Positions 22,766 to 60,336 of a DNA stretch of 64,000 nt are shown piece by piece (within the stretch, counting starts at the first letter, position 1; each line of letters opens with the position of its first letter). The stretch is from contig NC_087252.1 of NCBI RefSeq assembly GCF_037042905.1, positions 12,028,001 through 12,092,000 of the forward strand, written 5' to 3'. Origin of the DNA: Lytechinus pictus (Eukaryota). The translations under genes were made by a program, and so were the position numbers. Under the pieces are notes generated by a model that saw only the letters and a list, made by a program, of their open reading frames with translations, did not search any database and was not told the origin of the DNA.

Positions 22766-22800
22766 ACCATAGCGTCATTATAATTTGTTTTTGTCTCTTA

Positions 22801-28936: not shown

Positions 28937-28955
28937 TAAAGTGGGCGCTCTTTCA
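28937..28955 (-). promoter_or_regulatory. Conserved cassette upstream element (cassette 1 variant)
   Basis: TAAAGTGGGCGCTCTTTCA ~260 bp upstream of the ATG at 28680. Confidence 0.6.
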
Positions 28956-29571
28956 GCAGAAAATGTGATTAACGTAAGGGTGGAAAAGTATTATAAGCAT
29001 ATTGAAACTTTCGATGTAATTGCACAACTTATGTATACTAGAATTCCAACAAATCTTTTTTTTTGCCATCATGGTTTTTGAAATAATATTTTAATGTTCA
29101 AACAATGATTTAAGACTGCAAAATGCATTTTTCAAAACGAAGTGGGAATGAAACTTCATAGCCCTAAGTTTATTTCACGCCATGCCACATTGATTTAGCC
29201 AATACTGGTGCAGTAGATATCGGATCGCTCAAAGTAACAAAATGAGTCATCAACCATATAGTTTTGGCGTTCCCCATATATTTCGGGGGGAACCAAACAA
29301 AAATTGTAAAAGATTTTGAAGTTTGGAATAGTACCCTTTTTCGCATTCATGGTATTATTTTTCTTTCATTATTTATCTTTTCATTATTATTAACGGGCAG
29401 TCATTTTTTGTTCAGTTCAAGTCAATTCATTCTAAATGGGCAGCCCGATACCTTTAGCTCACAAACACACGTACCCTAGCGCGCATTCACACACACACCC
29501 CCCCCCCCCACACACACACACAAGAGACACTCTGTACGTCAGTGGTCGCTTGGATACATAGCAATATTATA

Positions 29572-29736
29572 CAGATATTGACTGATGGGGTTTGTAATAT
29601 AAACATTCTTTAGACCGCCGGATTTATATTTTCCCGAAGTGCGCAGCGCTGAGGGAAAATATGATCACGAGGGAAAATATTATTTTATTAGGCGGTTCAA
29701 ATATTTTTTTTTACACACCCCATCAGTCAATATCTG
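29572..29736. repeat. Long inverted repeat, probably the end of a transposon extending to ~30860
   Basis: cagatattgactgatggggtttgtaa / ttacacaccccatcagtcaatatctg, with inner accgcc/ggcggt and atattttccc/gggaaaatat arms. Confidence 0.7.
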
Positions 29737-31089
29737 ATAGCCTTGAATGATGAAGATAGATCTAACGTTAAATCTAAGCTAAAAAAAAGTTAGGTCTACG
29801 ATGCGTCCAGTAGATCAGTTGTGTATGATATTCACAGTGGCTGATGGAACTGGTAGAATTAATATTAGTCTAACGCATTGAATGCCCATTTTCTAATAAA
29901 AATTAAGTTTGTTTAGGCCTAACTTGTTAGATCTAATTTTAGAGTCCAGTCCAGGTCCAGGACCCAAGGGCAAGGCAGATCGCGAATGCATGTTGAGCCA
30001 TGATCAGGTGCAGATTCTGATCTAATTGGGGATGAGATAAACATGCCTAAGCTAGATCTAACGTTAGAACTAAATTATGTCAGACTACTGTTCGAGGTGG
30101 TCCTGATCTTTTTGTTGTCGAACCAGGTCCAGGACCAAATCTAAGTAATGTTTTGCTAACACTGACTTTAATATGTTGTCGTTAGCAAGATTTTACGCTA
30201 CATTTTTCTAACTTTTAGACTTTAGCCAAGATCTATATTTAACACGTTAAAAAGTTAGACCTAAATAGATCTTGGCCTAGGCCTAAATCTAGATCAACTT
30301 ACTCATTTTTATCGTCCAGAAGCTGATCTTATTCCTCATTGCTCATCAGACATCACCACAAATCTTTGACGTTAGACCAAATCCAAAACAAAAAATTTTA
30401 CAAGTAAGCTAAGCTTCACACTCCTTCAATCTCTATCTGGTAAACTTACTGTTAATTCTTTGGCTCCACTCACCAATACATATCCATAAATTGTTAAATA
30501 AATCCCCAAAATTTCAGAAATGACGGTTATTCCTATCTACACAAATAACTGATAGGGCATAACGTTTGATCCAACTCGTAGTAGACTCCTTGTCGTCGTC
30601 GGACTCGCTTAAATTCCGCGGTCCTGTACGTTCGAAGAGTGTTGATCGATTGCAAACGATCGCTACTTTAGTCCCACATATGTTATTTCCGTGTAAGTGA
30701 TAACATCTAATCCACAAGAGGGCGCCATACACGTAGAAAAATATATTCATGGAATGGCTGGTCAATATATTCATCGAAGATGGATCGGCTGGGAAATACA
30801 TTGATTTCGATCATATCACGTGACTCGCTTTGGATCAATCGCGCTTGGCTATCTAATATATCATTTTATATCACATAATACAAAATAGACATCAATTCAA
30901 AGAATTTTATTCTAAATATTAAATAGCTAAGCCACCAAATACATCTGAAAAAAAAATCACATTTCCGTGTGTTTATGCTGTACAAAGAAGTAAAGGATAC
31001 GATGATCTTCAATGAAGTTAGACATTGTAATGATTTAATATTAGTTCATCGTATTGTTAAATTCTGAATTATTTATTTTGGTCTTATTT

Positions 31090-34000
31090 CTAGATGATGA
31101 ATCGTGGTTGCCAGGCAACGGAAAGAGATGAAGATTTCGTCTGGTTTTGGTGAATGGTGAACCCAGAAGGTGGATGCGAGATGAAATCTAAAAAATATGA
31201 TGTAAACTGCAAAAATAAACTTAAGACGAAATGTTTATAAGTATCACTAAAATGTTAAAAATCAACACTTTACCATTTTTTGTGATGAGGCATTATTGAA
31301 AGGATAACGTGAATATATAATTTTAAAGCAAATTTTTTTAACTTCTTTACTCATTTTTATTCAGTTTAAAATGAAACATATCAAATTTAATTATTTTACA
31401 TGGGGTAGGAGTCACTAAAAGCCGCAGGCCTAGGCCTAAAAAGGATGATTCTTCTTGAAATGTATAAGAATATCAAAACAACATCAATTATGTAATAAAA
31501 AAGGTACACAACGTATATTGATCACATCACTTTATTTGTTATTTGATTATGAGAAAAAAAGAGATAACTGTAAGCTTACACAAATAAAGGGAATTCAATA
31601 CTGCACTTCCCGAGCCGTATTCTGATACAGCGGTGCAGTTGTAAACATAATGATACATGATGAGTGGGTTTTGAATCGCAAGTACGCTGGACCTTAGCGT
31701 TGCATCTTCATATAGAGTCTCGGTGAGATTGTAGTAATTGGGGTCGTTGGACACTACAGTTTCGTTGCAAAGCCAAACGAAGGTAATGGCAGGAGGATTG
31801 GCGTCCGCTTCACATATCAACACGAGCTCAGTAGTCCCACTTGCTTTGTTTGATGTAAGATGTCGAGCAGTGATTGACACAGCAGGATGATCTACATCAC
31901 AGAGACAAAATACCAAATAAAAAATAAATTAATATTGAATGGGAGAAGCATAAAGATAGGACAGCAATAGATAATGGAAAGACATTTATTTCGAAAGACG
32001 CAAAACAGAAAACAAACATTGTCATATTATCTTGTAAATAGAAGATGGTAGAGCCATTGTGGTCATAAATTGTCTCACGCGACTTTTATTCAGCATGTTC
32101 AGTCTGTTGTGAATTATGTAAAAACAAAAATCATAGAAACTCAAATTTTCTTTAAATTATTTTAAACACCTTCTACCAAACATTAAAAAAAGAAAACAAA
32201 ATAGCCAACGAGAAAAACATGTAGACAGACGAGATAAGTTGGAATTTTAAAAGTTTCCCCATCTCCCCAACCTGCCAAGGAGTCTTATCAAGTGCATGAC
32301 CGAAATCAGTACTTACATGTTATATTCAGAACCAAGCTTTGATTCACCGAACGAGCTGGGAGTGTTGTAGTTTGAACTGCCAGGCAGAGAAGACTTTTCC
32401 CATGGTCAAACCTCGTCGGTATTAGAGTCAGAGTGCTTTCAGCATCATATCGACCAGCTTTATTTTCACTTATGTTCAAAGATGAATCCGTTGTAAGATT
32501 TCTTGATCCGATGTACCAATGTATATGCGGTGCAGGGTATCCATTAGCAGCTTTGCAGGTTACATTTATTTCTGTGCCGTCATATAAGTCCAGAGGAAAA
32601 TTTATTTTGATGCCTTCTGGTGCGCCTTTGAACAAAACGTTAAAAAATAGTCCTAAATCTTTGTACTTAACTAAATAATGAGATTTTGGTACAAATAGAC
32701 ATTAACATATTTTATAGCTTTTATAAGGGGGAAAACTCTTTGCATACTTAGAAAACGTGAAATGCTCATTATCAGCGATGACGACGTAGCCCTTTTCAGC
32801 TTGGAAACTTGTAAGAAATTAAAAAACAATACACACATATTTACAATATACTTTATCAAGATGATGGTTAACAGTTAACACCTGATACATTATATTGAAC
32901 AACATTTGTATGGATTAAAATGTGGCTTAAGAAATAACCAACCAAAGGGAAGAAAAAAAACTCACCGTAAACGACCACTTTGGCAAACACCCATTCCACT
33001 AGAGATTCTTCAAGTAATGCAAAGCAATTAATGTACTTCCCATGATGTACAATATTTGGATGTATGATTACAGTACCCTCGGTGTCGAACAAAGCATCGT
33101 CTAAAATACTTGTTTTGCTTGAGATATTTGGAATAATTATTTCGGCGAGACCATTGCCACTTTCTAACTGAAAGGTTAGTTCGGTTGCTGGGAATGACCC
33201 AATACTTTTACATGTGATTGAAGTCGGTGAATCATCTTGAACGTAAAAGACTGTCGATTGTGACTGGTTACTTCCAGTTAGAAAGAGGAGCACACTCATA
33301 GGAAGAACTTCAAAGGAAAACATGAAGAGCGAGTCAGGGATAAAGAGAGATAGAGAGGGGGTGAGAAACAAAATGATTATAAAGAATATCTAGCAAATGT
33401 CAAATGTCATGAATGACCTTTTTTAGGGATACATACTGCATGAATATATTTTTCTGTAAACGTATAATGAAAGTAACATGGAAAACTAAAGTATTTAGTA
33501 TTTATATTTAAAAGGAAAGGAATTGATTCGTTTAACAGTAATACTGCTCGAAATTCACAGGTTTATATAAGTAAAACAATTACAAGCTTGGCAACCATAC
33601 ATAGTACCTACCATGAACATTCAGATGAACTGAGCATTGAAGGCTCTTAGATAGTTGTGGATGTGATGCGATGCAGGTGAGGATCTTTCCGTGGTCATTC
33701 CTGGAAAGCGTGATTCTCACAGCCTTCTGAGAGATGTAAAAGCTGTCTTGGATGACATCAGACTGATCCTGATGAACAACTGCCATATCATCAGGTAGAC
33801 ACCATTCCAATACTGCAGGGGGCATTGCTTCATATGCTTCGCATGTGATGTCATGTTGTTGACCAGCTATTACCGTTAGAGAGAGGTTGTTTATAAAGTG
33901 GTTAAAGATGCCCTCTCCATCAGTGATATAGAGCCGATTTGGTGGAGCTTGGGATGAAAATAAAATGCGTCCAATATCAAAGTCAATGTTTTTTTTATTT

Positions 34001-34322
34001 TTTCTAACTCAATTTGCATGGAATGATACACTTCTTAATATAGAATTATTTCAAATAATGCTCTCGTATAATATTCCGTTTCAGTAATTGGTTTTATCAT
34101 CACTAGTATGGCGTATACATTCATTTGGGTATAGTAATTTAGGGGACATATACACTATTCAGACTATTTAAGTCATATAAATCCATACGGTCAGCATTTA
34201 TATGCTTCGAACAAACAACTTTCATGAAGGTTATTAAACAACACATTGTACTTACAGCTTTGTGTGATGAGAATTTCAAGGCAAAGAACAAGAATCATAT
34301 GTTTTGAAATGGACGCCATCAT
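31090..34322 (-). CDS. Variable cassette 2: signal peptide, 4 Ig exons, FN3 stub (intact)
   Basis: Leader 34256-34322 (MMASISKHMILVLCLEILITQS); Ig1 33612-33947; Ig2 32966-33307; Ig3 32317-32625; Ig4 31580-31891; stub 31090-31187 ending VAWQPRFII*; all Ig exons are multiples of 3, phase 1. Confidence 0.88.
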
Positions 34323-34537
34323 TCGGTGAACAATGCGAAGAGGTCCTGTGTGTTTCAACTGACAGTAGATTCTAAACTAAAACAGAGTTTGTGAACACGA
34401 AATTACTACATTTGAAATTTGTAGGAAATTCACAATGGCACTTCCGTGTATTCTCTTACATCATGTGCAAAGATTTGGTTTCGCACACTTAAACACCAAT
34501 CAATATTACAGGTAAAATGTTAAAAGCTTGTTAGATT

Positions 34538-34556
34538 GAAAGCGGGCGCTCTTTCG
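34538..34556 (-). promoter_or_regulatory. Conserved cassette upstream element
   Basis: GAAAGCGGGCGCTCTTTCG ~215 bp upstream of the ATG at 34322. Confidence 0.7.
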
Positions 34557-35675
34557 TCAGTGGGCCTAAGAATGATATGATTATCCTTATGTACAGATAT
34601 AAAGGTGTCAGAATAGTATCCAGTAGATATTCTGGGTTGTTTTACGATTATAGAAATCTATTCAAAGTGAATGCCAATTTAAAGGAGCGTGTTTGTCATT
34701 GAACTCACAGTCAAGCAACCAATAAAAAATAAAATTGTCTAATTATTTTATAACGAATGTAATTATATTTTTTTTAGGACTAAGCTCAAACGCGCTAAAA
34801 GAATGGGGGGGGGGGGGGGCGATGTTCATGGTTAAAGTGTGGAAAGTGACACTCCTATTTTCGTTTCACACTGCTCCGTTTCTTGCAGCTATATTCTTGG
34901 TGAAGTGATAATTTTACTGTGTTCCTATTTTAAATATTCTCTTTTGGTTCTTGGGAAAATTTCAAGGTAAAATTTTATAACTTTGTAGTAAAACAAAGTT
35001 TGATAATGGGTGATGGTTAGTTTCAATGACTACGTGAATAAAGCGAATTTGTAGTCCAACATAGGCTCTTAATGACCTACGTACAGTGCGTTTCATGAAT
35101 TCTGAGTGTACAGTGTAGCTAATAATAGTGTGTGCACACGAGTTACTTTCAACAGAAGGCATAAAACACAGCCAACGGACTATTTCAGAAAACTGGGCAG
35201 ATTAAAGCTAATACGTCTCATAGACGGTTATCAAAATCAGGCTAATGAATTGCTACTTGTGTCTAAATTATAGTGTTTCATCCTATATTGCAGAGTGTTT
35301 CAGCATTTTGGAGAACAAATACAAACACTCATACACATGTTCCTTCTTGGCTTGATATGTATTTCATTTAAACGATCCCTTGATTTTTTTTTTCATCAAG
35401 ATTGTGATGTTGAGAAAAATGATTGAACGAGACCTTTACAATTTTCAGGTACCAACATATACAAAACTGGGGAAGCAGATGGTATTGTCGTTTGTATATG
35501 TTATGGTATATTGTTCAAAGTATTTTTTTTATGAAATAAATAGCCATCGAATGTATCACATCCTCGAGTTTTATACTGTAGAAATACGTGGACGATACGA
35601 TGGCTCATAAATTATAAGCTACTATATAAGAAACTCTATATTTTATTGATTTCATATCATTTGATCTCATTGTCC

Positions 35676-38974: not shown

Positions 38975-39201
38975 AATTAAGCGACAATATACAGCAATGC
39001 TACGAGATCCTACATGTTTCAACCGACAGTCAGCTCTGAACGGAAAGAAAGTATAAGAACACGAAGTTATGAGCTATATGAAATGTGATGGAGAATTAAC
39101 ATCAGCACTTCTTTGTATTCCTTCCTTCTCACATGGTTTCGATTTCGCATATAAAGACACCCGTCAACATAAAGGTAATTATGTTAAAGCTCGTTATGAT
39201 G

Positions 39202-39220
39202 GAAAGCGGGCGCTCTTTCG
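39202..39220 (-). promoter_or_regulatory. Conserved cassette upstream element
   Basis: GAAAGCGGGCGCTCTTTCG ~230 bp upstream of the ATG at 38974. Confidence 0.7.
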
Positions 39221-39883: not shown

Positions 39884-41523
39884 CAGGGCCGTAGCCAGAA
39901 GCATTTTGTTGGGGGGGGGGGGGGCGGGTGTACCAGCTAAATTTGCCAACTAAATTTGGCGTGATCGCACCAACGTGAGCACAGGGGGAGTCTGATGGGG
40001 GATGTGCCCCCCCCCCCCTACAATAATCACATGCCAAAAGATTTTGAATTTTTAAAATTAAATTAGTGGCATTTGGTGAATACTTTAAGGTAAATTATAC
40101 AAAGATATACAAAGATATTTGCACTGTAAAAATAAACATTTTGGATAAAAATAAAAAGGCTAGTGTGCCGTAGTTGCTAACTTGCAGTATAATTATTTAC
40201 CCTATGCATTAATAATATAAAAATCAAAGATTTTTTAATTTTTAATTGACCTTCTGTGCAAGACACTCAACTAAAATTTCAAGAGTGCTACTGCTAACAG
40301 TGGCGTACCGTGGGTCGCGGCATGGGGGGGCAGCAAAAAAATTTAGTCATTAAGTGGGCGCGCGAAGCGCGCTCAACTGCCAGGTATACTGACCTAATAG
40401 AGACACTTTAAGGACTATGCAATTAAACAGATATGTATCTTAGTGATTAAATAATGCGAGCGCGAAGCGCGAGCTGAAAATGTTTGATATTCAGTCCTAA
40501 AAAGGGACATTATAAGCAAAGTTTTGTAATTATGATATGTACCTGTCTCACAAAACAAACAATGCGAGCGCGAAGCGCGAGCGGAATTTTTTTGTATAAC
40601 TTGACCCTAAAAAGGGACGTTTAAAGGACTATCTTTTGGAATTCATGAAGTGCGTACGTATCTCATCATAGTGATCTAATGCGAGCGCCAAGCGCTTGCT
40701 GATTTTGTTATAATTACAACTAAGCACATGAAGCACTTTTTGTGGTCATTGTAATCATGAACATGATACGTATTTCACTAATGAAATATTGCGGCCCAGA
40801 AGGGCGAGTTGACAATTTTTGAAATGTAGACCTGAAGAGGGGCGTTCTATGGTCTGTTTGTAGGAATTTACTATTTCACTAATCAAGTGATGCAAGCGCG
40901 AAGCGCGAGCTGAAAATTTGTTATAATTAGATCAGAAAAAGGGACATTTTAAGGACTGTCTTTAGGAATTCGTGCACTGCAAAAAAAACGCCGGTGTTGA
41001 TTTAACACCAGCCCGGTACCTATATCGGTCCACACCAATGCAAACGTAAACACAGACTGGAAATGTTTTATATTAAGGCCTTAAAAGGGGGCAGTCACTT
41101 CAAGTATATATTCATGAAAAAAGCATATATCACTACACAAAACAATAATAACTTGTGTTTTTTGCCAACTGCAAACTTGTAGACAAGTCTACAAGTTGTA
41201 CACTTGTCTTCATGAATTTGCCAACTGCAGAGTTCTGTTCTTTTTAGTTCTGAAACGGGGCAGTACTTGTACATCACTTTGTCTTGCCTCTAATTTTACA
41301 AAACTAATGTGTTTGTTAAATCGTCAATAATTGTGGTATAATTTGCAAACTCACAAGCTTGTTTATATTAGGGGAGGACCGGGGGCTTACTTTGTGCGTT
41401 ATTATAGCTCCATCTGTTTTGTCCTATGTATTTTGCTGACTAGTAGGTCTCTAAGCCTGGCTACATGGACTTGGATTTGCCAACTGGTTGTCTTTACTCC
41501 ATAAGTCGTAACCTTCTTCGAAG
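39884..41523. mobile_element. Nested non-autonomous DNA-transposon-like insertions with an internal ~110 bp tandem array
   Basis: Interrupts sequence homologous to ~51780 at 39884 (CAGGGCCGTAGC); second terminus-like CAGTGGCGTA at 40298; GCGAGCGCGAAGCGCGAGC-type units at ~40358, 40456, 40564, 40681 and 40892; CACTGC at 40975. Confidence 0.6.
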
Positions 41524-41670
41524 NNNNNNNNNNNNNNNNNNNNNNNNNNNNNNNNNNNNNNNNNNNNNNNNNNNNNNNNNNNNNNNNNNNNNNNNNNNNN
41601 NNNNNNNNNNNNNNNNNNNNNNNNNNNNNNNNNNNNNNNNNNNNNNNNNNNNNNNNNNNNNNNNNNNNNN
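41524..41670. other. Assembly gap (147 N)
   Basis: Run of n. Confidence 1.
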
Positions 41671-41937
41671 TGATATGTTGTTAAAACTATTTTTGATTAT
41701 TTATAAAAATACATTTATTCATTAAAATAAATTTCCCTTCAAAGACCCTTTTGTTCAATCAAATATAAAAAAAAAAATAAAAAAAAATCGGATTTATCAT
41801 ATTTTCGAGTGTTTGTACTGTAAAAAAACGTAGGCGATGTGAAGGCTAATATATGCTACTCTATATGAAAATATGCATCTTACTGATTTCATATAATTTG
41901 ATCTCATTGTCCTTACTTTTAGAAAAATGTTTTTGTC

Positions 41938-44900
41938 TCATTTTCCGATGATGAACTCATGTTTCCAGGCAACGAAAAGAGATGAAGATCTCGTCTGGTG
42001 TTGGTGGATGATGAACCCAGAAGGTGCATTTGGAATTAAATCTGTAAAACCAAAAATAGATGAGAACTGCAAAAAAATATATATATATAACGAGATGAAT
42101 TTTCAAAGATTAACAAAATGTTAAATCAATACAATACTTTCTGTAATATGACATTATTGATAATATAACGTATATATTTCATGTTGAAGAAAAATTAGTT
42201 AATTTATTTACTCCTTATCATCTATTTAGTTTAAAGTGAAACATATCAAATTCAAGTAGTTTACAATGTTGAGGAGACATAAGCCACAGGCCTAAAAAAT
42301 GATGATTCTCCATGTATGCAAATCAAAGCGAAATCAATTAAGTAATACAAATTACACAAAGTATTTTGAAATATTTAAATATTTTTAATTTGTTATTCAA
42401 TTATTAGAAAATGGGGGGGGGGGGGGGAATAGTTGTAAGCTTACACAGATAAAGGGAATCGAATACCGCACTTCCCGAGCCATATTCTGATACAGCGGTG
42501 CATTTATAAACAGAATAATAATTGGAGAGTGGGTTTTGAATCCCAAGTACACTGGTCGTTAGTGTTGCGTTTTCCGATATTGTCTCGTGGAGTCTGTAGT
42601 TATTGGTGTCCTTTGACACTACAGTTTCGTTGCAAAGCCAAACGAAGGTAGTGACAAGAGGATTAGCGTCCGCTTTACATATCAACACGGGCTCTGTAGT
42701 CCCACTTGCTTTCTTCGATGTAAGACGCCGAACAGTAATTGACACAACGGGAGCATCTAGACCAAAGAGACAAAATGCAATTTGCTAGTAATGAATATGA
42801 AATAAAAGAAGCATACAGATCATAAGAAAAGGACAGAAATCGATAATGATTTTTTTTTCTTAGAAAGAGACAAGACGGAAAACAAAACATTGGCTAATTA
42901 CTTTGTAAAAATAAGGTTGCAGTGTCATTTTATATATAATTTGTCTCGTGGCGACGTTTATAGTTTTCTTTACAATTTTTAAAACATCTACTAAACATGC
43001 AAGCAGTCTTATCGAAGCTACTACCAAAACCAGAACTTACATGTTACGTTCAGAACCAAGCTTTCATTCACCGAACGAGCTTGGAATGTTGCAGGTTGAA
43101 TTGCCTGGCAGAGAAGTTGCTTCCCATTGTCAAATCTCGTCGGTATTAGAGTAAGCGTGCTTTCAGCATCATATCTACCAGCCGGATTTTCACTTATGTT
43201 TAAATACGAATCCTCTGTAAGATTTTTTGATCCAATGTACCAATCAATTAACGGTGCGGGGGATCCATTAACAGCTTTGCAGGATATATTTATTTCTATG
43301 TCGTCGTACAGATTCCCAAGGAAAGTCATTTTGATGCCTCCTGGCGGGCCTTTGAATGAAACGTAAACAACGAATTCAATGCCGTAAAAGAAGGAAATAA
43401 GTTTGTGTTCAATATAAACCCACTTAATGTATTTTGTAATTAATAAAAGGGGTCGAAAACACATCTTGCGAACTTTTATTTTCTTATATTATGTGAAATC
43501 CTCAATGCCAGCGATGACGACGTGGCCCTTTTTAGTAATGACAATTGTAAGATATCCTAAACAATACTATTATTTTGTTTAAGCATGTAAATGATCATGC
43601 TTAACATCGGATAACACCGATAAAAAGGGAAAATATTTCATCAATATTGTGTATGAATAAGGAATGCAGTTTTTAAAATTGCAAACCTAAAGGGGTGAAG
43701 AAGAACTCACCGTAAACGATTACGTTGGCATACACCAATTCCACTATAGATTCTTCAAGCGATGCGAAGCATTTAATGTACTGTCCATGATGCACAATAT
43801 TTAAGTGTAAGATTACAGTACCTTCGGTGTCAAACAGAGCATCGTCCAAAATGCTTCTTTCGCTTGAGATATTTGGAATAATTCTTTCGCCGAGACCATT
43901 GCCACTTTCTAACTGAAAGGATAGTTCAGTTGCTGGGAATGACCCAATACTTCTACATGTGATTGAAGTCGGTGAATCTTCTTGGACGTATATGAGTCTT
44001 GACTGGGACTGGCTACCTCCAGTTGAAAAGAGCAGCACACTCATAGGAAGAACTTCAAATGAAAAGAAAAAGAGCGAGGGATAAAGAGAGATAAAGACAG
44101 GGGAAAAGGGAAGGAATGACAATAAAAATTGTGTTGAATATCATTAACAGATGCTAAATGGCATGAAGAATTGGATGAATTTTAAAAGTGACACGCCGTT
44201 TGCTTTTATTTTTTGGTATACATGTACGTATAATATTAACATCGGGTGATAAATAAATATATTTGCAAGAAAAAGAAATCGATTGGTCTAAGAGTAATAT
44301 TGTTCAATGTAAAGAGGTTTGTTTTAAATGGACGCTGACAAGCTGGGAGTAAATGAGGCAGCCATCGGTGTACATAACCTAGAGACAGATATATTTATAC
44401 AAAATACCTACCATGTACATTCATATTTACTGTGCATTGAAGGTTTTCTGATAGTTCTTGATGTGATGCGATGCAGCTAAGAATCTTTCCGTGGTTATCC
44501 CTCGAGGGTGTTATTGTCACGGCTTTCTGAGAGATGTAAAAGCTGTCTTGGATATCATCAGACTGATCCTGATGAACAACTGCCATATCATCAGGTAAAC
44601 GCCATTCCAATACTGCAGGGGGCATTGCTCCATATGCTTCACATGTGATGTCTTGTTGTTGGTCAGCTATTACGGTTAGAGAGATGTTGTTTGAGTAGTA
44701 AATGGTGCCCTCTCCATCAATGACATAGAGCCAAGTGGGTGGAGCTTGCGATGAAAAACATAATACATTCAAGTATTAGAGGCATCATTCCTCATTTGTC
44801 TAAATCATTTTACGTGAAAGCATACATTTCTTAGATATAGAATTATGTAATTAGATGCCCAAGTAGAATATTCGGAGCTCCGCTAAAGTAACTATCATCC

Positions 44901-45105: not shown

Positions 45106-45307
45106 TCAGCATGTTCAGTGATCATACAGTAGGCAATGCGAAGACGTTCTGTATATTCCGACAGACAGAACATTCTAACAAAAATACATGAAATGTTTGG
45201 ACAATTAACAATGGCACTTACTTACATTCCTTCCTTCTTACTTGGATTCGGTTTCGCAAACTGTCTTAAATAATCACCAATATAACATGTAACAAAAGTG
45301 TTAGATC

Positions 45308-45326
45308 GAAAGCGGGCGCTCTTTCG
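45308..45326 (-). promoter_or_regulatory. Conserved cassette upstream element
   Basis: GAAAGCGGGCGCTCTTTCG ~200 bp upstream of the ATG at 45105. Confidence 0.7.
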
Positions 45327-50486: not shown

Positions 50487-50563
<77 letters not shown>

Positions 50564-50881: not shown

Positions 50882-51112
50882 CGTAATTAAGCGACAAATT
50901 ACGACAATGCTACGAGATCCTACCTGTTTCAACCGACAGTCAGTCCGAATGGAAAGAAAGTATAAGAACACGAAATTATGAGATATGAAATGTGTTGGAA
51001 AATGAACATCGGCACTTCTGTATAGTCCCTCCTTCTTAGGTGGTTTCGGTTTCGCATACTATCAAAGACACCAGTCAACATAACAGGTAACTATGTTAAA
51101 GCTCGTTAGATG

Positions 51113-51131
51113 GAAAGCGGGCGCTCTTTCG
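51113..51131 (-). promoter_or_regulatory. Conserved cassette upstream element
   Basis: GAAAGCGGGCGCTCTTTCG ~230 bp upstream of the ATG at 50881. Confidence 0.7.
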
Positions 51132-52257
51132 TCTATGAGCCTATGTGTATCATCGTGTGACGGCAGAAATCTATTAAAACTGTATGCCAACATGAAAAAG
51201 CGTATTTTTCATTAAAATCATATTCAAACAACGAACGGATATTGTAATTGTATTTTATGTTAAAACGAATGTAATTTAGTTTTGTAAGATTAAGCCCAAA
51301 CGCTCTAAAAGTAAAGGGAAGCGATGTTCATGATTGAAATATGGAAAGTGTCTATACTCCTAAACAAGTTTCACACTGTGCTTTGTTTCCTTCAGTGATG
51401 TTCTTGTGAACGTTATAGTTTTACTTTAATCTTGATCTGATTCCTTTTTTTAAATATAATTTTGGTTCTTAAAAAATGAGGTGTGGTTTCAATGACAACG
51501 TATATATAGCGAATCTGTACTACATGTTACAACACACAAATTCTGGATGAACACAGCATGACCTACATACAGTGCGTTCAATGCACGCTGAATGTACAGT
51601 GTAGCTAATAATAGTGTATGCCCGTGAATACACACAACAGAAAGCGTTCAACGCAACCAACAGAATCTTTGAATTTGAGAAAACTGGGCATAAGCTATTC
51701 GTCTCAGAGAGGGTTATCAAAATGATGCTAATAAATTACTACTTGTGTCTAAATTATAATCTGTCATCCTATATTGCGGAGTGTTTCAGCTTTTTGTCGA
51801 ACAAATACAAGCACTCATACACATGTTTCTTCTTAGCTTAATATTGTTTTTCTATTCAGCTGCTCATATATTTCAACGATCTCTCTACTTGTTTTATTCA
51901 TCAAGAGTGTGATGGTGAGGAAAATGAGTGAAGGCGGCCTTTACAATTTCAGGTACCAGCATATCCAATATTGGGGAAGCAGATGGCCTTGTCGTTTGTT
52001 AAAACTATTTTTGATTATTTATAAAAATACATTTATTCATTAAAATAAATTTCCCTTCAAAGACCCTTTTGTTCAATCAAATGTAAAAAAAAAAAAAAAA
52101 AAAAACATCGGATTTATCATATTTTCGAGTGTTTATACTGTAAAAAAACGTAGGCGATGTGAAGGCTAATATAAGCTACTCTATATGAAACTATACATCT
52201 TACTGATTTCATATAATTTGATCTCAATGTCCTTACTTTTAGAAAAATGTTTTTGTC

Positions 52258-55200
52258 TCATTTTCCGATGATGAACTCTTGTTTCCAGGCAACGAAAAGA
52301 GATGAAGATCTCGTCTGGTGTTGGTGGATGATGAACCCAGAAGGTGCATTTGGAATCAAATCTGTAAAAAAAAAAAATAGATGAGAACTGCAAAAATATA
52401 TATATATATATAACGAGATGAATTTTTAAAGATTAACAAAATGTTAAATCAATACAATACTTTCTGTAATATGACATTATTGAAAATATAACGTATATAT
52501 TTCATGTTGAAGCAAAATTAGTTAAAGTATTTTTTCCTTATCATCTATTTAGTTTAAAATGAAACATATCAAATTCAAGTAGTTTACAATGATGAGGAGA
52601 CATTATAAGCCACAGGCCTAAATAATGATGATTCTCCATGTATGCAAATCAATGCGAAATCAATTAAGTAATACAAATTACACAAAGTATTTTGAAATAT
52701 TTAAATATTTTTAATTTGGTATTCGATTATTAGAAAATGGGGGGAAATAGTTGTAAGCTTACACAGATAAAGGGAATCGAATACCGCACTTCCCGAGCCA
52801 TAGTCTGATACAGCGGTGCATTTATAAACAGAATAATAATTGGAGAGTGGGTTTTGAATCCCAAGTACACTGGACGTTAGTGTTGCGTTTTCCGATATTG
52901 TCTCGTGGAGTCTGTAGTTATTGGTGTCCTTGGATACTACAGTTTCGTTGCAAAACCAAACGAAAGTAGTGACAAGAGGATTAGCGTCCGCTTTACATAT
53001 CAACACGAGCTCCGTAGTCCCATTTGCTTTGCTCGATGTACGACGTCGGACAGTAATTGACACAACGGGAGCATCTAGATCAGAGACAAAATGCAATTTG
53101 CTAGTAATGAACATGAATTAAAAGAAGCATACGGATCATAAGAAAAGGACATAAATCGATAATGATTTTTTTTTTCTTAGAAAGAGGCAAGACGGACAAC
53201 AAAACGTTGTCTAATTACTTTGTAAAAAAAAAGGTTGCAGTGTCATTTTATACATAATTTGTCTCATGGCGACGTTTATAGTTTCTTTACAATTTTTAAA
53301 ACATCTACTAAACATGCGAGCAGGAAGAGCAGATAAAAAATACTTTAAAAGCCAATGGGTCAACTAGGAAAATATGATTAAGGTCGATTGCATTAAAAAA
53401 AAAAAGGTTCCCTATCTATCCGACCAGCCAAGCAGTCTTATCGGAGCTATTACCAAAACCAGAACTTACACGTTACGTTCAGAACCAAGCTTTGATTCAG
53501 CGAACGAGCTTGGAATGTTGTCGGTTGAAGTGCCCGACAGAGAAGTTGTTTTCCATTGTCAAATCTCGTCGGTATTAGAGTAAGCGTGCTTTCAGCATCA
53601 TATCGAGCAGCTGTATTTTCACTTATGTTTAAAGATGAATCCTCTGTAAGATTTTTTGATCCAATGTACCAATGAATTAACGGTGCGGGATATCCATTAA
53701 CAGCTTTGCAGGATATATTTGTTTCTATGTCGTCGTACAGATCCCCAAGAAAAGTCATTTTGATGCCTCTTGGCGGGCCTTTGAACGAAACGTAAAAAAC
53801 GATATACATAATCCAATGCCGTAAAAGTAGGAAATAAGTTCGTGTTCAATATGAACCCGCTTAATGTATTTTGTAATTAATAGAAGGGGTCGAAAACACA
53901 TCCTGCAAACGTTCATTTTCTTAGATTATGTGAAATCCCCAAAGCCATCGATGACGACGTAGTCCTTTTTAGCAATGAAAATTGTAAGAAATCCTAAACA
54001 ATACTATTTAGAATATTTTTTTCAGCATGCAAATGAGCATGGTTAACATCGGATAACACATAAAAAGGGATACTATTTCATCAACATTGTGCCTAAATAA
54101 GGAATGCAGTTTCAACAATTGCAAACCTAAAGGGGTGAAGAAGAACTCACCGTAAACGATTACTTTGGCATACACCAATTCCACTACAGATCCTTCAAGC
54201 GATGCGAAGCATTTAATGTACTGTCCATGATGCACAGTATTTAAGTGTAAGATTACAGTACCCTCGGTGTCAAACAGAGCATCGTCCAAAATGCTTCTTT
54301 CGCTTGAGATATTTGGAAGAATTCTTTCGCCGAGACCATTGCCACTTTCTAACTGAAAGGATAGTTCAGTCGCTGGGAATGACCCAATACTTCTACATGT
54401 GATTGAAGTCGGTGAATCTTCTTGAACGTATATCAGTCTTGACTGGGAATGGCTACCTCCAGTTGAAAAGAGCAGCACACTCATAGGAAGAACTTCAAAG
54501 GAAAAGGGAAAGAGCGAGGGATAAAGGGAGATAAAGACAGGGGAAAAGGGAAGGAATGACAATAACAATTGTGTTGAATATCATTAAAAGATGCTAAATG
54601 GCATGAAGAATTGGATGAATTTTAAAAGAGACGCGCCGTTTGCTTTGATTTTTTGGTATACGTAGAATATTAACATCGGGTGATAAATATATTTGCAAGA
54701 AAAAGAAATGGATTGGTCTAAGAGTAATATTGCTCAATGTACAGAGGTTTGTGTAAAATGGACGATGACAAGCTTGGAGTAAATGAGGCAGCCATCGGTA
54801 TACATAACCTAAAGACAGATATATTCATACAAAATACCTACCATGTACATTCATATTTACTGTGTATTGAAGGTTTTCTGATAGTTCTTGATGTGATGCG
54901 ATGCAGCTAAGAATCTTTCCGTGGTTATCCCTTGAGGGTGTTATTGTCACGGCTTTCTGAGAGATGTAAAAGCTGTCTTGGATATTATCAGACTGATCCT
55001 GATGAACAACTGCCATATCATCAGGTAAACGCCATTCCAATACTGCAGTCGGCCTTGCTCCATATGCTTCACATGTGATGTCTTGTTGTTGGTCAGCTAT
55101 TACGGTTAGAGAGATGTTTTTTGAGTAGTAAATGGTGCCCTTTCCATCAATGATATAGAGCCAAGTGGGTGGAGCTTGCGATGAAAAATATAATGCATTC

Positions 55201-55550
55201 AAGTAAATGTAATGCATTTAAGTATTAGAGGCATCATTCTGTATTTTTCGAATTCATTTTACGCGAAATGATACATACTTATATATAGAATTATGTAATA
55301 AGATGCCCTAGTAGAATATTCGGAGATCCGTTAAAGTAACTACCATCCTTCATGTGGCCTACAAATAATTTAGGGGCCATATTCATGCATCTGTGCTAAC
55401 CCTAGCATATTCATACGGACAGTGCTTATTTGCTTCGTGCAAACCACTGTAATGAAGGAAATTACACTACACATCATACTTACAGCTTTGCGAGATGATA
55501 ATTCCAAGGCAAAGACCGAGAACTACTTGCATTGAAATGGACGTCATCAT
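52258..55550 (-). CDS. Variable cassette 6: signal peptide, 4 Ig exons, FN3 stub (intact; close paralog of cassette 4)
   Basis: Leader 55484-55550; Ig1 54842-55174; Ig2 54151-54492; Ig3 53470-53778; Ig4 52763-53074; stub 52258-52361 ending VAWKQEFIIGK*. Confidence 0.88.
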
Positions 55551-55752
55551 TCAGCCTGTTCAGTGATCATACAGTAGGCAATGCGAAGACGTTCTGTATG
55601 TTCCGACAGACAGAACATTCTAACAAAAAGACATGAAATGTTTGGACAATTAACAATGGCACTTACTTACATTCCTTCCTTCTTACTTGGATTCGGTTTC
55701 GCAAACTGTCTTAAATAGCCACCAATATAACATGTAACAAAAGTGTTAGATC

Positions 55753-55770
55753 GAAAGCGGGCGCTCTTTC
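55753..55770 (-). promoter_or_regulatory. Conserved cassette upstream element
   Basis: GAAAGCGGGCGCTCTTTC ~200 bp upstream of the ATG at 55550. Confidence 0.7.
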
Positions 55771-56161
55771 ATCAGTGGGCCTGAGTATAATTTGAATATC
55801 GTTATGCAAGGGTATCAAAATAGTATGCGGTATATATTTTCATAATGGATTTTATGCGAGTGTAGAAATCTGTTCAAATTGAATACGAAAAAGAACAAGC
55901 CTGTTTTTTCATTGAACTCACATTCAAACAACGAGCAAAATTTTTTTTATATCGAATGTAGTTTTATTTTTGTAAAACTAAGCTCAAACGCGATAAAAGT
56001 AGGGGAAAGCGATTTTCATGATTGAAGTGTGGAAATTGATACTCCTAGCTATCTTTCACACTGCTCCGTTTCTTGCAGTTATATTCTTGTCAAAGTGATC
56101 GTTTCAGTTCGTTCTAATTTTTAACAATCTCTGTTTTGTTCTTGGAACTATTTACAAAAGT

Positions 56162-59100
56162 TTAATCATGTATGAGGATCTGTTTTAACGACAACGTGCA
56201 TATGGCGAATGTAGCGATGTTCTCATACCCTAATGTTGATCCTGGTTGCCAGGAAACGAAAAGAGATGAAGATCTCGTCTGATTTTGGTGCATGATGAAC
56301 CCAGATGGCGGATTCGGGATAAAATCTGTAAAACAGAAGAAACATTGTAAAAACAAAACATAACGGGATACGTTAATAACAAAGATGAAATATAAAATCA
56401 ATACATCAATATTTATGTGCTAAGACGATATTGGTAGGATTAAATGATTATTTGATTTTGAAACAAAATGTATTAATTAATTTATTATTTTTCTTTATTC
56501 GAATTGAAATACAACATATCAAATTCAACTATTTTACGATATGGAGGGTCCATTAAAAGCCACATGTCTAACAATGTTTTATTTTTGTTTGGTATAAGAC
56601 GAAAAACATCAAATATATGTATGTAAAACCACACAAAGTATGTATAATTATTTTGATCACATCACTTTATTTGTTATTGATTATTTCAAAAGTAAATGAT
56701 AATAGCTTACACAAATAAAGGGAACTGGATTCTGCACTTCTCGAGCCGTATTCTGATACAGCGGTGCATTTATAAACACAATGATATTTGGAGAGTGGGT
56801 TTTGAATCGCAAGTACGCTCGATGCTAGTGTTGCATCTTCATATAGAGTCTCGGTGAGTCTGTAGTTGGTGTCGTTTGACACTACAGTTTCGTGGCATAG
56901 CCAATCGACGGTATTGACAGGAGGATTGGCGTCCGCTTTACACGTCAACACGAGCTTAGTAGTCCCACTTGCTATGTTTGATGCAAGACGTCGAGCAGTA
57001 ATTGTCACAACGGGATGATCTACATCACAGACACAAAATAAAAAAATTATAGAAATGGATAAGAAAAGTATAATAATCATGGGGACGGGATAAAGATAGA
57101 TGATAAAATCAAGTTCATGTACGTAAAAAGAAGCAAAACACAAAACAAAACATTGTCCAATAACTTTCTGAAAAGAAGGATGCAGTGTCATTTTGGATAA
57201 AGTTTGTCTCGTTTCTACATTTACAGTGTGTGAACGTAAAAAGAAATCCAAATGGGTCACGTTTTCTTTAGAAATATTGTTTAACACATAACAAGCGGAC
57301 AGCAGAAGCAGAAAAAAGTATCTTAAATAATCAAAGAGTCAACGAGGAAAGCGTGTAGACAGACAAGATTATCTGCAATTCAAACGGGTTAACTATATAT
57401 ATTCCCCCAGTCCACTAGTCTTATTTAATGCATTAAAAAAAATCACCACTTACATGTTATGTTCAGAACCAAGCTTTGATTCACCGAACGAGCTGGGAGT
57501 GTTGTAGGTTGAACTGCTTCGCATAGAAGACTTTTCCCATGATCAAACCTCGTCGGTCTTAGAGTTAGGACGCTTTCAGCATCATATCGACCAGCTTTAT
57601 TTTCACTAATGTTTAAAGATGAATCCTCTGTATGATTTCTTGATCCGATGAACCAATGGATATGCGGTGCAGGGTATCCATTAACAGCTTTGCAGGTTAC
57701 ATTTATCTCTATACCTTCGTAGAGGTCCGCTGGATAAGTAATTTTGATACCTTCTGGTGGGCCTTTTAACGAATCGTAAAAAGGGTATGTATAAATCAAT
57801 ACCGTAAATTCAATAATACTATTTTGGTTCAAACGGTACCTACTTGGTGTATTCTGTAATTTGTAGAAGGGGTGGAAATAAAATCCATCTTACAAACCTT
57901 CGTTTCCTTACATTAAGTGAAATCCCCAATATCAGCGATGACGAACTGAATATCAGTAAGACCCCCCCCCCCTCCATACACATCTATTTAGAATATTATA
58001 CTTTGTCATGTACATGTAAATTATGGCGGTTAAGACGAGATACATGTAACTTCTAATAAGCCAATAGATTGTAAGATATTTTGTATGACAAAAAAACGCC
58101 TTTTGAAAAACAAACCACCAACCAAAAGGGGGAAAACTCACCGTAAACAATCACTTTGGTGGACATAAATCCGACTATGTGTTGTTGAAATGATGCGTAG
58201 CAATAAACGTACTTCTCATGATGCTCAATATTTAGGTGCATGGTAATAGCTCCCTCGGTGTCGAACAACGTATCGTCTAAAGTACTCCTTTTGCTGGAGA
58301 TATTTACACGAATAGGGATCCTGTCAGCAAGACCAGTGTCACCTTCTATCTGAAATGATAGTTCGGTCGCTGGGAATGACCCAATACTTTTGCAAGTAAT
58401 TGAAGTCGGTGAATCTTCTTGAACGTATATGTCTATTGACTGTGACTGTTTATCTCCAGTTGGAAAGAGCAGCAGCTTTATAGGAGGTACTTCAAAGGAA
58501 AAGAGAAGAGCAAGTCAGCGAGTTAGGGTAAGGCAGAGAGGAAATGAGAGAAGGAATGATTTTAAAGAATTTAGTTCACTTAACACATGCTAAATAGAAT
58601 AAATGATCAGAATATTTTGAAGTCGGCTTGTTTAACAGTAATATTGCTTTACATCTATAAGTTTGTTTTGTTTGATCAATAAAAGGCTGGACAACAAAAA
58701 TGAGAATGCATGTCATCGGGACATAACCAACAGATAGAAATATTCATGAAAATACTTACCCTGAACAGTAAGGTGAACAGAGCATTGAAGAATCCTTTGT
58801 AGTTCTGGGTGTAATGCGACGCAGCTCAAAATCTTCCCTTGGTCAATTCTCGAGGATGTGATTGTAACCGCCTTCCTGGAGATGTAAAAACTGTCTTTAA
58901 TGACATCCGACTGTTCCTGATGAACAACGGCCACATCCTCTGGTATACGCCATTCCAATTTTGCAGGAGGCAATGCCCGCGTTGCTATACATGATATGTT
59001 GTACGGCTCTCCAGCTATTACCGTTAAAGAGTAGTTGTTGAAGAAGCGGATGCCCTCTCCATCAATGATGTAGATCCAAGTGGGTTGAGCTTGCGATGAA

Positions 59101-59168
59101 AATATAATGCATTCAGTATTAAAGAAAATATTCTTTATTGTTCTAAATGATTTTACATGGAAGGATAC

Positions 59169-59210
<42 letters not shown>

Positions 59211-59826
59211 AAAGACTTAATAGAAACGCCGTAAGGAGACATAATCTTCCAAATTTTCGGTCATAGACCTTCTTCAGGGATGAATTTATTAAATCCAAAA
59301 CAGGTTGCATCATTTGGTGATGATACCAACGCGCAATAAATATAATGCGCAACAACATAACTAACGCGACAGGTGCATTGTTAGATGATATTGTGACGTA
59401 ATGAGTAAAGTCCAGGCAACTATTATGACGTAGAGTAAAAACGGCAAAAGAGTCTATCGATCCATCGGTAAAGAAAGAAAAGTTCACTTGGTCTCAGGCA
59501 TTGGGAAGGCGCGGAAAGACACATTCATTCCGTGGGGTGCGAGGGTCCCGAGACTGTAGATCAGCTTCTCTTCTTTGAGTTTGCGATCCGTCTCACGGTC
59601 GCAAGGGATGGCAACGCATACCTGTAGATCGTTGATGAAATGTCCAGGTTGGTTGAAATGCGTTGCAACTGGAAGGCCAGGTGTGTTAAGTCGGATCGAA
59701 CGCAGGTGCTCTGTTACTCTGTCTGCTAGACGTCGTTTGGTCTCTCCAATATAAAGCTTAGAGCAGCGAGAGCATCGTATAGCATATACGACGTTTCTGG
59801 TGGTGCACTTGAAGCACCATATTGAA

Positions 59827-59872
<46 letters not shown>

Positions 59873-60137
59873 ATTATTCAATATGGTGCCCTCGCTGAAT
59901 ATTCGCACCTTAAAGTATCATCCATCATATTAAGTACAGGGTTCTTTTGGGAATAATTTAGGGGAAAATATACGCATTCATGCTAACCCATGCGTATTCA
60001 TACGGCAAGTGTTTATGTGCTTCGTACAAACTACGTTCATGAACGATATTACACTACGATTCATACTTACAGCTTTGTGAGATGATAATTTCAAGGCAAA
60101 GACCAATAACTACTTGCATTGAAATGGACGTCATCAT
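56162..60137 (-). CDS. Variable cassette 7: signal peptide, 4 Ig exons, FN3 stub (intact)
   Basis: Leader 60071-60137 (MMTSISMQVVIGLCLEIIISQS, in-frame TGA just upstream); Ig1 58760-59089; Ig2 58142-58489; Ig3 57454-57762; Ig4 56711-57019; stub 56162-56325. Confidence 0.88.
59201..59815 (-). mobile_element. Penelope-like element 3' fragment (GIY-YIG endonuclease) between (TA)n tracts in cassette 7 intron 1
   Basis: CTTRNVVYAIRCSRCSKLYIGETKRRLADRVTEH..PVATHFN..EEKLIYSLGTLAPHGMN; flanked by TA runs at ~59171-59200 and ~59831-59871. Confidence 0.88.
59248..59281 (-). ncRNA. Minimal type I hammerhead ribozyme motif of the Penelope-like element
   Basis: Minus strand tcc-CTGAAGA-a-GGTC-tat-GACC-GAAA-attt-gga. 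Confidence 0.65.
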
Positions 60138-60317
60138 TCAGTGATCATAGGCAATGAGACGACGTTCTGTCTATTCTGACAGACAGAAGATTCTAACAAA
60201 AAAACATAAAATGGTTGGACAATGAACAATGGCACTTCCGTATATTCCCTCCTTCTCACTTGGATTCGGTTTCGCATACTGTCTTAAATACCCATCAATA
60301 CAAAAGTTCGCTAGATC

Positions 60318-60336
60318 GAAAGCGGGCGCTCTTTCG
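60318..60336 (-). promoter_or_regulatory. Conserved cassette upstream element
   Basis: GAAAGCGGGCGCTCTTTCG ~180 bp upstream of the ATG at 60137. Confidence 0.7.

Follow-up and report, generated by a model that had tools for sequence, protein, structure and literature searches.

Analysis of a 64,000-nt stretch of the Lytechinus pictus genome (here termed the window) revealed a short element that is conserved above the neutral rate and constrained in position and orientation in front of tandemly arrayed Ig genes. It is probably a proximal-promoter site recognised by a sequence-specific transcription factor and confined to one subfamily of the tandem Ig array. Its position, orientation and excess conservation (within L. 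pictus, across Lytechinus species and in Strongylocentrotus purpuratus), its restriction to the family and the autonomy of the genes were observed directly; its fixed place before each gene, together with its retention across urchin species, makes it very probably a switch site for these genes.

The window is part of L. pictus chromosome C8, where a row of about 630 kb holds more than 60 nephrin/Kirrel-like Ig units. Units A-G and the proximal receptor gene, the sole full-length gene of the window, are on the minus strand, and unit H, a class-1 unit, lies directly beyond the window end. The array genes are mostly truncated, and their products are presumably secreted. Units D and F are 95% identical, as are block pairs of the distal array, so that recent duplication is real. 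Identity within the species may be inflated by gene conversion between tandem copies. The following features were located, in window coordinates:

5521-10935, minus strand: FN3 and tail exons of the proximal full-length receptor gene (complete FN3 exon 10560-10935; tyrosine-rich cytoplasmic tail exon 5521-5919)
41524-41670, no strand: assembly gap in the non-coding D-C spacer, overlapping no exon and no element copy
52032-52361, minus strand: terminal exon of unit F (FN3 remnant; own stop codon 52258-52260, AATAAA 52032-52037)
52763-54470, minus strand: Ig exons of unit F (Ig2 ~54150-54470, Ig3 53470-53777, Ig4 52763-53074)
55484-55550, minus strand: signal-peptide exon of unit F, MMTSISMQVVLGLCLGIIISQS, with a phase-1 GTAAGT donor
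28701, 34322, 38974, 45105, 50881 and 60137, minus strand: ATG of the signal-peptide exons of the other units

The assembly gap starts 44 nt beyond the AATAAA of unit D, and both of its sides are collinear with the paralogous F-E spacer; since it adjoins one end of a 1.6-kb insert unique to the D-C spacer, its listed length may not be its true length.

Regarding gene structure, each unit has its own stop codon in the FN3-remnant exon. Within 700 nt, a poly(A) signal is present in seven of the eight class-1 units (AATAAA 196-223 nt after the stop in units D-H and 15-31 nt after it in B and C), and no AATAAA was detected over that distance in unit A. RNA support came from the contigs of one run (X1), whose type is unrecorded but which behaves like RNA, the junctions being of the GT..AG type on the minus strand; spliced contigs confirmed the unit F introns 53778-54149 and 53075-53469, and one continues beyond the unit F stop codon. 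The RefSeq model P0162 corresponds to unit F and predicts a stand-alone product of 488 aa. Thus, the units are self-contained genes rather than exons spliced to a constant region, with rare long-range splicing possible, and the stops, poly(A) signals, unit F contigs and RefSeq models suggest that this locus is not a cassette system of the protocadherin type.

The 18-mer GAAAGCGGGCGCTCTTTC has six exact copies in the window (units B-G below), and a seventh copy with two mismatches, TAAAGTGGGCGCTCTTTC, precedes unit A; all seven match the plus strand, whereas shuffled sequence gives a chance expectation of 0.01 matches at three or fewer mismatches. Because the genes are on the minus strand, the element reads GAAAGAGCGCCCGCTTTC in gene orientation:

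28937-28954, minus strand: element copy of unit A, a variant reading GAAAGAGCGCCCACTTTA in gene orientation
34538-34555, minus strand: element copy of unit B, GAAAGAGCGCCCGCTTTC in gene orientation
39202-39219, minus strand: element copy of unit C, exact
45308-45325, minus strand: element copy of unit D, exact
51113-51130, minus strand: element copy of unit E, exact
55753-55770, minus strand: element copy of unit F, exact
60318-60335, minus strand: element copy of unit G, exact

In all seven distal units of the window the 5' end of the element precedes the first in-frame ATG of the signal-peptide exon by 198-253 nt, and no match to the 18-mer was found upstream of the proximal full-length unit, even at five or fewer mismatches. 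The preliminary description of this DNA had reported these copies in one shared orientation, a near-invariant element about 180-260 bp before each cassette ATG, and a proximal unit lacking it, and in all of these respects it was borne out.

Regarding conservation, no other block in an alignment of 16 promoters comes close to the 18-mer, which has 7 Fitch parsimony changes compared to a median of 34 among 18-column windows (Poisson P 2e-8, a rough guide only); the runner-up blocks are an ISRE-like element (17 changes) and the end of the signal exon with its donor (18 changes). On the same tree, the element has changed about five times less than its flanks and less than the adjacent coding exon. 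Conservation no higher than that of neighbouring sequence had been named beforehand as an outcome that would refute the element, and a count of 7 against a flank median of 34, far above neighbouring sequence in conservation, does not refute it. In five orthologous promoters of Lytechinus variegatus the element is kept at 89 of 90 positions while the aligned non-coding flanks are 85-90% identical (binomial 1.3e-4, with an assumed neutral divergence of 12%). It could be argued that the element has no function of its own and is a stretch of a duplicated unit whose identity reflects nothing more than recent duplication or gene conversion, as the 95% identity of the D/F and distal block pairs and the conversion-prone nature of tandem arrays would allow. 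This is very unlikely, however, given the deficit of changes relative to both flanks and coding exon on one tree, the retention of the element between species whose flanks differ by 10-15%, and the persistence of its core in promoters that can no longer be aligned and in S. purpuratus. Strongylocentrotus and Lytechinus diverged roughly 50 million years ago.

Comparison of promoter classes defined which part of the element is constrained. On the gene strand this is GAAAGAGC(GCCC), extended to GAAAGAGCGCCC in class 1, the promoter class of the window, and not the CGCT or CTCF-like half. In a second L. pictus promoter class (class 2, 24 copies), GAAAGAGCACACTCTNTC stands about 310-320 nt before the ATG and is likewise oriented, although nhmmer profiles of the class 1 and class 2 promoters did not retrieve promoters of the other class. 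In homologous units of S. purpuratus, GAAAGAGCGCC... is located 280-288 nt before the ATG and GTGAAACTGAAWC at +74. In an unbiased k-mer intersection, the only 7-10-mers common to the class 1 and S. purpuratus promoters tile GAAAGAGCGCCC, and the sole 8-mer that class 1 has in common with class 2 is GAAAGAGC. On the plus strand the invariant half is thus GCTCTTTC, and the half varying between the classes and S. purpuratus is AGCGGGCGCT; following the core start, class 1 and S. purpuratus have AGCGCCC, class 2 has AGCACAC, and class 3 promoters (units I and J) have TGCACAC. The GAAAGAGC core was not detected in the proximal full-length gene, units I and J or other subfamilies, nor anywhere in a L. 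variegatus locus of a different subfamily (L047), and in one class-2 copy of L. variegatus the core is degenerate.

The 18-mer had also been described as doubly palindromic, and GAAAG can indeed pair with CTTTC, but neither the partner half nor its spacing is constant across class 1, class 2 and S. purpuratus, so the symmetry is not conserved and the palindromic look is largely incidental. A true palindrome or dimer site was rejected, the inverted-repeat spacers being 8 nt in class 1, 4 nt in class 2 and 5 or 1 nt in S. purpuratus. As exon 1 and the promoter are not covered by the contigs of run X1, the element might be part of the 5' UTR, and with GAAAG-CTTTC pairing possible within the 18-mer it might act post-transcriptionally, with the UTR sequence or a hairpin in it influencing translation or stability. 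This is very unlikely, however: predicted stability is no better than that of shuffled sequences (z -1.1 and -0.6), the pairing partner is the non-conserved half with no compensatory changes seen, and both S. purpuratus and class 2 have TATA-like boxes downstream of the element, which is suggestive only, class 2 also having a candidate leader-exon splice donor downstream of it.

The preliminary description went on to suggest that the element may be a CTCF-bound site of the protocadherin type, serving promoter choice or looping; a kept element at fixed distance and orientation survives from that reading, while CTCF, promoter choice and looping found no support. As in the protocadherin CGCT box, a CTCF site, a short element containing CGCT and CpGs, always in one orientation, lies at a near-constant distance before the start codon of each tandem paralogue (PMC7811963), here in seven of seven distal units, and the spacing and tandem layout favour such a reading, as do the nine of ten bases that agree with AGGGGGCGCT. 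The copy of unit H and its L. variegatus orthologue, AGGGGGCGCTC, even reach 17.9 of 19 bits on the short CTCF core, the only high-scoring variant among the element copies, and invertebrate CTCF orthologues are reported to bind a shorter motif that lacks the 5' domain and has an additional C at its 3' end (bioRxiv 10.64898/2026.10.19.759930), which counts in the same direction. However, the element sites otherwise reach 10.8 of 19 bits for the short 3' core, a value equalled or exceeded by 112 other sites in 264 kb, and a full matrix (CCASYAGRKGGCRSY core) gives -5.7 to +4.2 of 31.8 bits, the matrix used and its scores being approximate. Most copies have C at the R position, a base that the matrix almost never allows, and none of the essential AG..GGC positions falls within the invariant GCTCTTTC (plus strand). 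GCTCTTTC is retained in class 2 and S. purpuratus although the G/GGC positions are disrupted there, so that the conservation profile is the reverse of that of CTCF: the half that varies is the CTCF-like one. A scan of window positions 1-13000 found no convergent CTCF-like site of at least 10 bits downstream of 5521, and echinoderm CTCF motifs show no orientation pattern and no loop-anchor enrichment (PMC13317027), which counts against CTCF. Unlike in the protocadherin clusters, the constrained bases are those of GAAAGAGC(GCCC) on the gene strand while the CGCT half varies between classes and species, and the urchin units are complete genes with their own stops and 3' ends, not first exons spliced to shared constant exons. 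A protocadherin CSE-type CTCF site for stochastic promoter choice or looping to a distal enhancer is therefore very improbable, and CTCF as the conserved binder was rejected on the matrix scan, the strong-site search and the literature alike.

Genome-wide, a generalised form of the 18-mer has 24 matches, comprising 22 in the cluster, one in a C16 paralogue and one unrelated (control 0), and the composite of element and ISRE-like block has 10 matches, with 8 in the family. Taken alone, the 11-mer GAAAGAGCGCC is about five-fold over-represented in the genome (264 versus 55), and its matches include a run on C6 at 26.2-27.2 Mb. This excess, and 14 dispersed exact copies of GAAAGAGCGCCCGCTTAA sharing the first 16 nt, could indicate a dispersed-repeat or tRNA-like fragment co-opted by, or merely sitting in, the promoters. 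That origin is extremely improbable, as the flanks of the promoter copies are family-specific and the composite module is found mostly in the family (8/10), while one 16-mer coincidence is expected about 0.4 times (an estimate from genome size) and one such coincidence amplified by a repeat would give this picture. A transposon origin was likewise rejected, the generalised motif and composite module being restricted to the cluster and the C5 and C1 matches having unrelated flanks. A literature search on the 10-mer returned only unrelated papers, as judged by titles and abstracts.

The preferred reading, a proximal-promoter site for a transcription factor, is consistent with the blocks found beside the element. 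In every class, an ISRE-like GAAAnnGAAA element lies 45-60 bp downstream of the core, and class 1 has in addition an ETS-like GGAAGTG block about 100-130 bp upstream of the start codon:

55689-55700, minus strand: ISRE-like element of unit F, GAAACCGAATCC, the second most conserved promoter block
28849-28860, 34471-34482, 39135-39146, 45244-45255, 51042-51053 and 60262-60273, minus strand: ISRE-like copies of the other units
55658-55666, minus strand: ETS-like block of unit F, GTAAGTGCC, of the GGAAGTGCC type
34437-34445, 39104-39112, 45213-45221, 51011-51019 and 60231-60239, minus strand: ETS-like copies of other units

By its tandem GAAAnnGAAA, the neighbouring block is a predicted ISRE/IRF element; the tandem is exact in units C and E, the remaining class-1 copies read GAAACCGAAT and unit B GAAACCAAAT, class 2 has TTTCATTTTC or TTTCAGTTTC in reverse, and S. 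purpuratus has GAAACTGAAAC or GAAACTGAATC.

Among the known factors compared, no motif fits the element convincingly. The core shares a GAAAG half-site with IRF/ISRE and PRDM1 (BLIMP1) elements, whose motifs overlap (PMC2938208), and the S. purpuratus flank gives AAGAGAAAG, which fits the consensus AANNGAAA in an unscored comparison; in contrast, the core has a single GAAAG followed by AGCGCCC instead of tandem GAAAnnGAAA, and the L. pictus flanks do not fit AANNGAAA in the same unscored comparison. The metal response element TGCRCNC of MTF-1 resembles the GCRCMC that follows GAAAGA, its two degenerate core positions coincide with the two class-variable positions, and class 3 (units I and J) matches it exactly with TGCACAC. 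Its invariant first T, however, is A in classes 1 and 2 and S. purpuratus and T only in class 3, and the MTF-1/MRE resemblance is a lead only. E2F, EGR, GCM, NF-kB, STAT, HSF and P3A2/NRF1 were discarded as misfits on comparing their consensus sequences by eye. As in sea-urchin cis-regulatory footprints between Strongylocentrotus and Lytechinus, short blocks outlast neutral alignability, but here the element is common to dozens of paralogous promoters and not to one orthologous pair.

As a transcription factor site, the element would be bound by a protein and would lie upstream of the transcription start, where its asymmetric core, GAAAGAGC on the gene strand with the class-1 extension GAAAGAGCGCCC, would work in a fixed orientation. 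The core may be the upstream member of a module in which the ISRE-like GAAAnnGAAA follows 45-60 bp downstream, with the ETS-like block next in class 1, and this module could drive a common pattern of cell-type or inducible expression. Its richness in GAAA hints at immune regulation of the IRF/PRDM1 type, and an asymmetric core of 12 bp would also be suitable for binding by a multi-zinc-finger protein. More speculative, and unlikely, is that the GAAAGAGC core and the ISRE-like block form a shared address by which one inducible factor co-activates, or picks one per cell from, dozens of secreted Ig genes in sea-urchin immune cells.

A CGCT-containing palindrome before tandem receptor genes is thus, by itself, no evidence of CTCF-based promoter choice. 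The 12-bp core and its ISRE-like partner, with defined coordinates, provide a testable handle on the control of a secreted Ig-fold array of more than 60 members, in a species amenable to reporter injection and stable genetics. If a shared address of this kind did exist, it would represent an invertebrate form of clustered recognition-gene choice that evolved independently of the CTCF/protocadherin logic, and if the module proved immune-inducible, an uncharacterised family would be linked to echinoderm immunity and its regulator identified.

Seven tandem units (A-G) with minus-strand coding exons, 4-6.8 kb apiece, are present in the window, each consisting of a signal-peptide exon, four C2-type Ig exons and a terminal exon. 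All six exact copies of the upstream element GAAAGCGGGCGCTCTTTC listed in the preliminary description were recovered on the + strand (6/6), and a seventh copy with 2 mismatches is located at 28937, also on the + strand, against a chance expectation of 0.01 matches to an 18-mer in this sequence (G+C 35%, CpG observed/expected 0.83, a single gap at 41524-41670). The near-invariant, uniformly oriented element described there is thus borne out, as is its placement ~180-260 bp upstream of the ATG, the distance from the element 5' end to the first in-frame ATG of each unit being 198-253 nt. The gene-strand reading of the element is GAAAGAGCGCCCGCTTTC. The unit G element is separated from Ig1 by 1.2 kb instead of about 0.56 kb because intron 1 contains an ORF with a GIY-YIG nuclease domain (59484-59861, minus strand; Pfam E 6e-5), which is probably a Penelope-like element.

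Conservation was assessed in an alignment of 16 class-1 (window-type) promoters, comprising those of the 8 contiguous units A-H (H being the next unit past the window end), 3 other paralogues and 5 L. variegatus copies, with changes counted by Fitch parsimony on a maximum-likelihood tree. The element showed 7 changes in 18 columns compared to a median of 34 per 18-column window, the runners-up being an ISRE-like block (17 changes) and the signal-exon end with its splice donor (18 changes). In the five syntenic L. pictus/L. variegatus promoter pairs, aligned flanks were about 85-90% identical and same-position identity of the element was 89/90.

Genome-wide, the exact 18-mer was detected seven times, six times in the window and once beside a paralogue on chromosome C16; copies with 1 mismatch were found at unit H (a GGGGG variant) and at C8:11918454, and a 2-mismatch copy at C8:11922395 heads another paralogue. 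The generalised pattern GAAAGAGCRCMCKCTNTC had 24 genomic matches (22 in the cluster, the C16 paralogue and one unrelated), while its control had 0 matches genome-wide. Requiring an ISRE-like word within 35-65 nt after the element gave 10 matches, of which 8 are in the family, one of these being another member of the cluster (C8:11759361). The bare 11-mer GAAAGAGCGCC is over-represented in the genome (264 vs 55), in part because of the 14 dispersed copies of one 18-mer, GAAAGAGCGCCCGCTTAA, which shares the first 16 nt of the element and occurs exactly at 14 places on 12 chromosomes (e.g., C1:4592047, C3:10750447, C8:8875005); these copies may represent a tRNA-like or other repeat family. At least nine matches to GAAAGAGCGCC fall within 1 Mb at C6:26.19-27.22 Mb, those with lower coordinates on the + strand and those with higher coordinates on the - strand, and this run may be another clustered family with the same core. 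The element itself is genuine, under strong constraint and restricted to this Ig gene family.

Regarding other promoters of the family, the distal (class-2) units encode an additional V-like domain and differ in their signal peptide (MAYHIWC...), and their promoters were not detected by the class-1 promoter profile. They carry GAAAGAGCACACTCTNTC, in the same orientation as in class 1 and about 310-320 nt upstream of the ATG, in 24 promoters within 200 kb. The most conserved class-2 block is ISRE-like (5 changes), and the element is among the top four blocks (11-12 changes vs a median of 21), with position 16 varying freely. In two class-2 promoters a tRNA-like SINE is inserted and the element is degenerate. 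In a third class, with signal peptide MASY..., the element is reduced to GCACACTCTGT; its promoters are:

C8:12101573-12101621, third-class promoter of unit I
C8:12106943-12106991, third-class promoter of unit J
L048:25559, third-class promoter in a further sequence locus (L048)

This class keeps TTGCACACTCTGT, including an exact TGCACAC, and also has a TTTCGATTTTC block, both being identical in L. variegatus. In S. purpuratus, the homologous protein P0178 led to units of this type arranged in tandem; at 280-288 nt upstream of the signal ATG, three of their promoters have GAAAGAGCGCC and then a 3' part that varies, the fourth promoter has GAGAGAGCGCCC, and GTGAAACTGA(A/G)(A/T)C is present in all four about 74 nt past the element start.

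When k-mers in the 400 nt upstream of the ATG were intersected (at least 7/8 L. pictus class-1 and at least 3/4 S. purpuratus promoters), the only shared 7-10-mers tiled GAAAGAGCGCCC, and the only 8-mer common to classes 1 and 2 was GAAAGAGC. This sharing across classes and with S. purpuratus identifies the GCTCTTTC side of the 18-mer (+ strand) as the constrained core, the AGCG/CGCT half being variable. The double palindrome seen in the preliminary description is not what is conserved, since the inverted-repeat partner differs in both sequence and spacing between promoter groups. The core of the element predates the Lytechinus-Strongylocentrotus split, ~50 million years ago.

The preliminary description had compared the element to the CGCT box of protocadherin promoters, which is indeed bound by CTCF (PMC7811963). 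Scored with an approximate version of the vertebrate CTCF matrix, class-1 sites reached -5.7 to +4.2 of 31.8 bits on the full matrix, which speaks against a CTCF site; on the 3' core of this matrix alone they reached 10.8 of 19 bits, a value equalled or exceeded by 112 sites in 264 kb (the window joined to the following 200 kb), with 17.9 in unit H only and 4.6 bits for class-2 sites. The element also prefers C at the R position of the matrix, where C almost never occurs in CTCF sites, and the pattern of constraint across classes and species is the opposite of that which CTCF would impose. Invertebrate CTCFs are reported to have a shorter motif with a 3' C (preprint, bioRxiv 10.64898/2026.10.19.759930), which leaves CTCF binding at class-1 promoters a small probability. 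Echinoderm CTCF motifs show neither a boundary orientation pattern nor loop-anchor enrichment (PMC13317027). Downstream of 5521, where the preliminary description advised looking for a convergent site, the window has no CTCF-like site of at least 10 bits on this approximate matrix. The best canonical CTCF-like match of the 264 kb (30709-30727, + strand; 19.9 bits, same approximate matrix) is a single copy located in an unannotated 95-codon ORF between units B and A. On present evidence, neither the element nor the locus represents a CTCF or protocadherin-type system.

The gene structures are those of self-contained genes, and the protocadherin-like cassette picture is not supported because the units have their own stops and, in seven of the eight, poly(A) signals, and because of the unit F contigs and the RefSeq and L. 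variegatus models. All units A-H have a stop codon of their own (8/8); of a fibronectin-III domain, the terminal exon retains no more than the initial ~28 codons ahead of this stop. AATAAA follows the stop by 196-223 nt in units D-H and by a shorter distance in B and C, unit H has an additional ATTAAA 68 nt past the stop, and no AATAAA was detected within 700 nt of the stop of unit A. Spliced contigs of unit F from one public run (GT..AG ends, minus strand) join Ig2-Ig3-Ig4 and the terminal exon and extend beyond the stop codon, and the L. pictus RefSeq protein P0162 (488 residues) corresponds exactly to unit F and ends at its stop. In the L. variegatus annotation most orthologous units are separate genes of about 500 residues, the exceptions being one 174-aa fragment model and one model running into the next unit. 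None of seven L. pictus models examined joins a class-1 unit to constant exons, though rare long-range splicing of this kind may occur. The proximal unit has:

10560-10935, minus strand, complete FN3 exon
5521-5919, minus strand, tyrosine-rich cytoplasmic tail exon

Several tyrosine motifs, YMNT and YMDM among them, occur in the tail of this full-length receptor; we take them to be of the PI3K/Grb2-docking type. The signal exon of the gene was not found in 14606-24400. A non-LTR retrotransposon (17354-20286, minus strand; three consecutive ORFs with reverse-transcriptase-like text) lies upstream of the gene or within its first intron. The 264 kb hold 35 units and one tail, and C8 11.70-12.34 Mb contains 64 Ig1-like exons, all on the minus strand (64/64), and only three tail exons. 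The exon products have their matches among Lytechinus proteins, and the genome is that of L. pictus. Most genes of this ~630-kb array are truncated, and their products are presumably secreted. The distal array (C8:12092001-12292000, loci L025-L044) includes a recent segmental duplication of ~39.5 kb, exemplified by near-identical units at joined coordinates 154669 and 194333.

One interruption of the assembly falls within the array:

41524-41670, assembly gap in the D-C spacer, 44 nt past the unit D AATAAA

The sequence immediately above it (41678-42097) shares 96% identity with the unit F 3' end, and 39100-39883 matches the promoter side of unit E at 88% identity, so that the two sides of the gap have the same order and orientation as in the paralogous spacer. 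No reading frame crosses the gap. It adjoins a 1.6-kb stretch specific to the D-C spacer (39884-41523), in which internal repeats measure about 70-230 bp and are 71-82% identical, and the gap length is therefore uncertain.

The element is most likely a protein-binding site in the proximal promoter, which would work together with the ISRE-like block, and in class 1 also with an ETS-like block, so that the genes of the family share one expression programme. Downstream of the element lie TATA-like boxes and, in class-2 promoters, a putative leader-exon splice donor, which suggests that the element is located roughly 80-160 nt ahead of the start site. GAAAG suggests an IRF or PRDM1-type factor as a candidate; the element also resembles the metal-response core in GCRCMC, but the first T is missing. 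Asymmetric 12-bp sites are typical of multi-zinc-finger proteins, and such a protein is a further candidate binder of the asymmetric 12-bp site in the element. The element belongs to a familiar category, the conserved promoter site; it is the gene family that is unusual.
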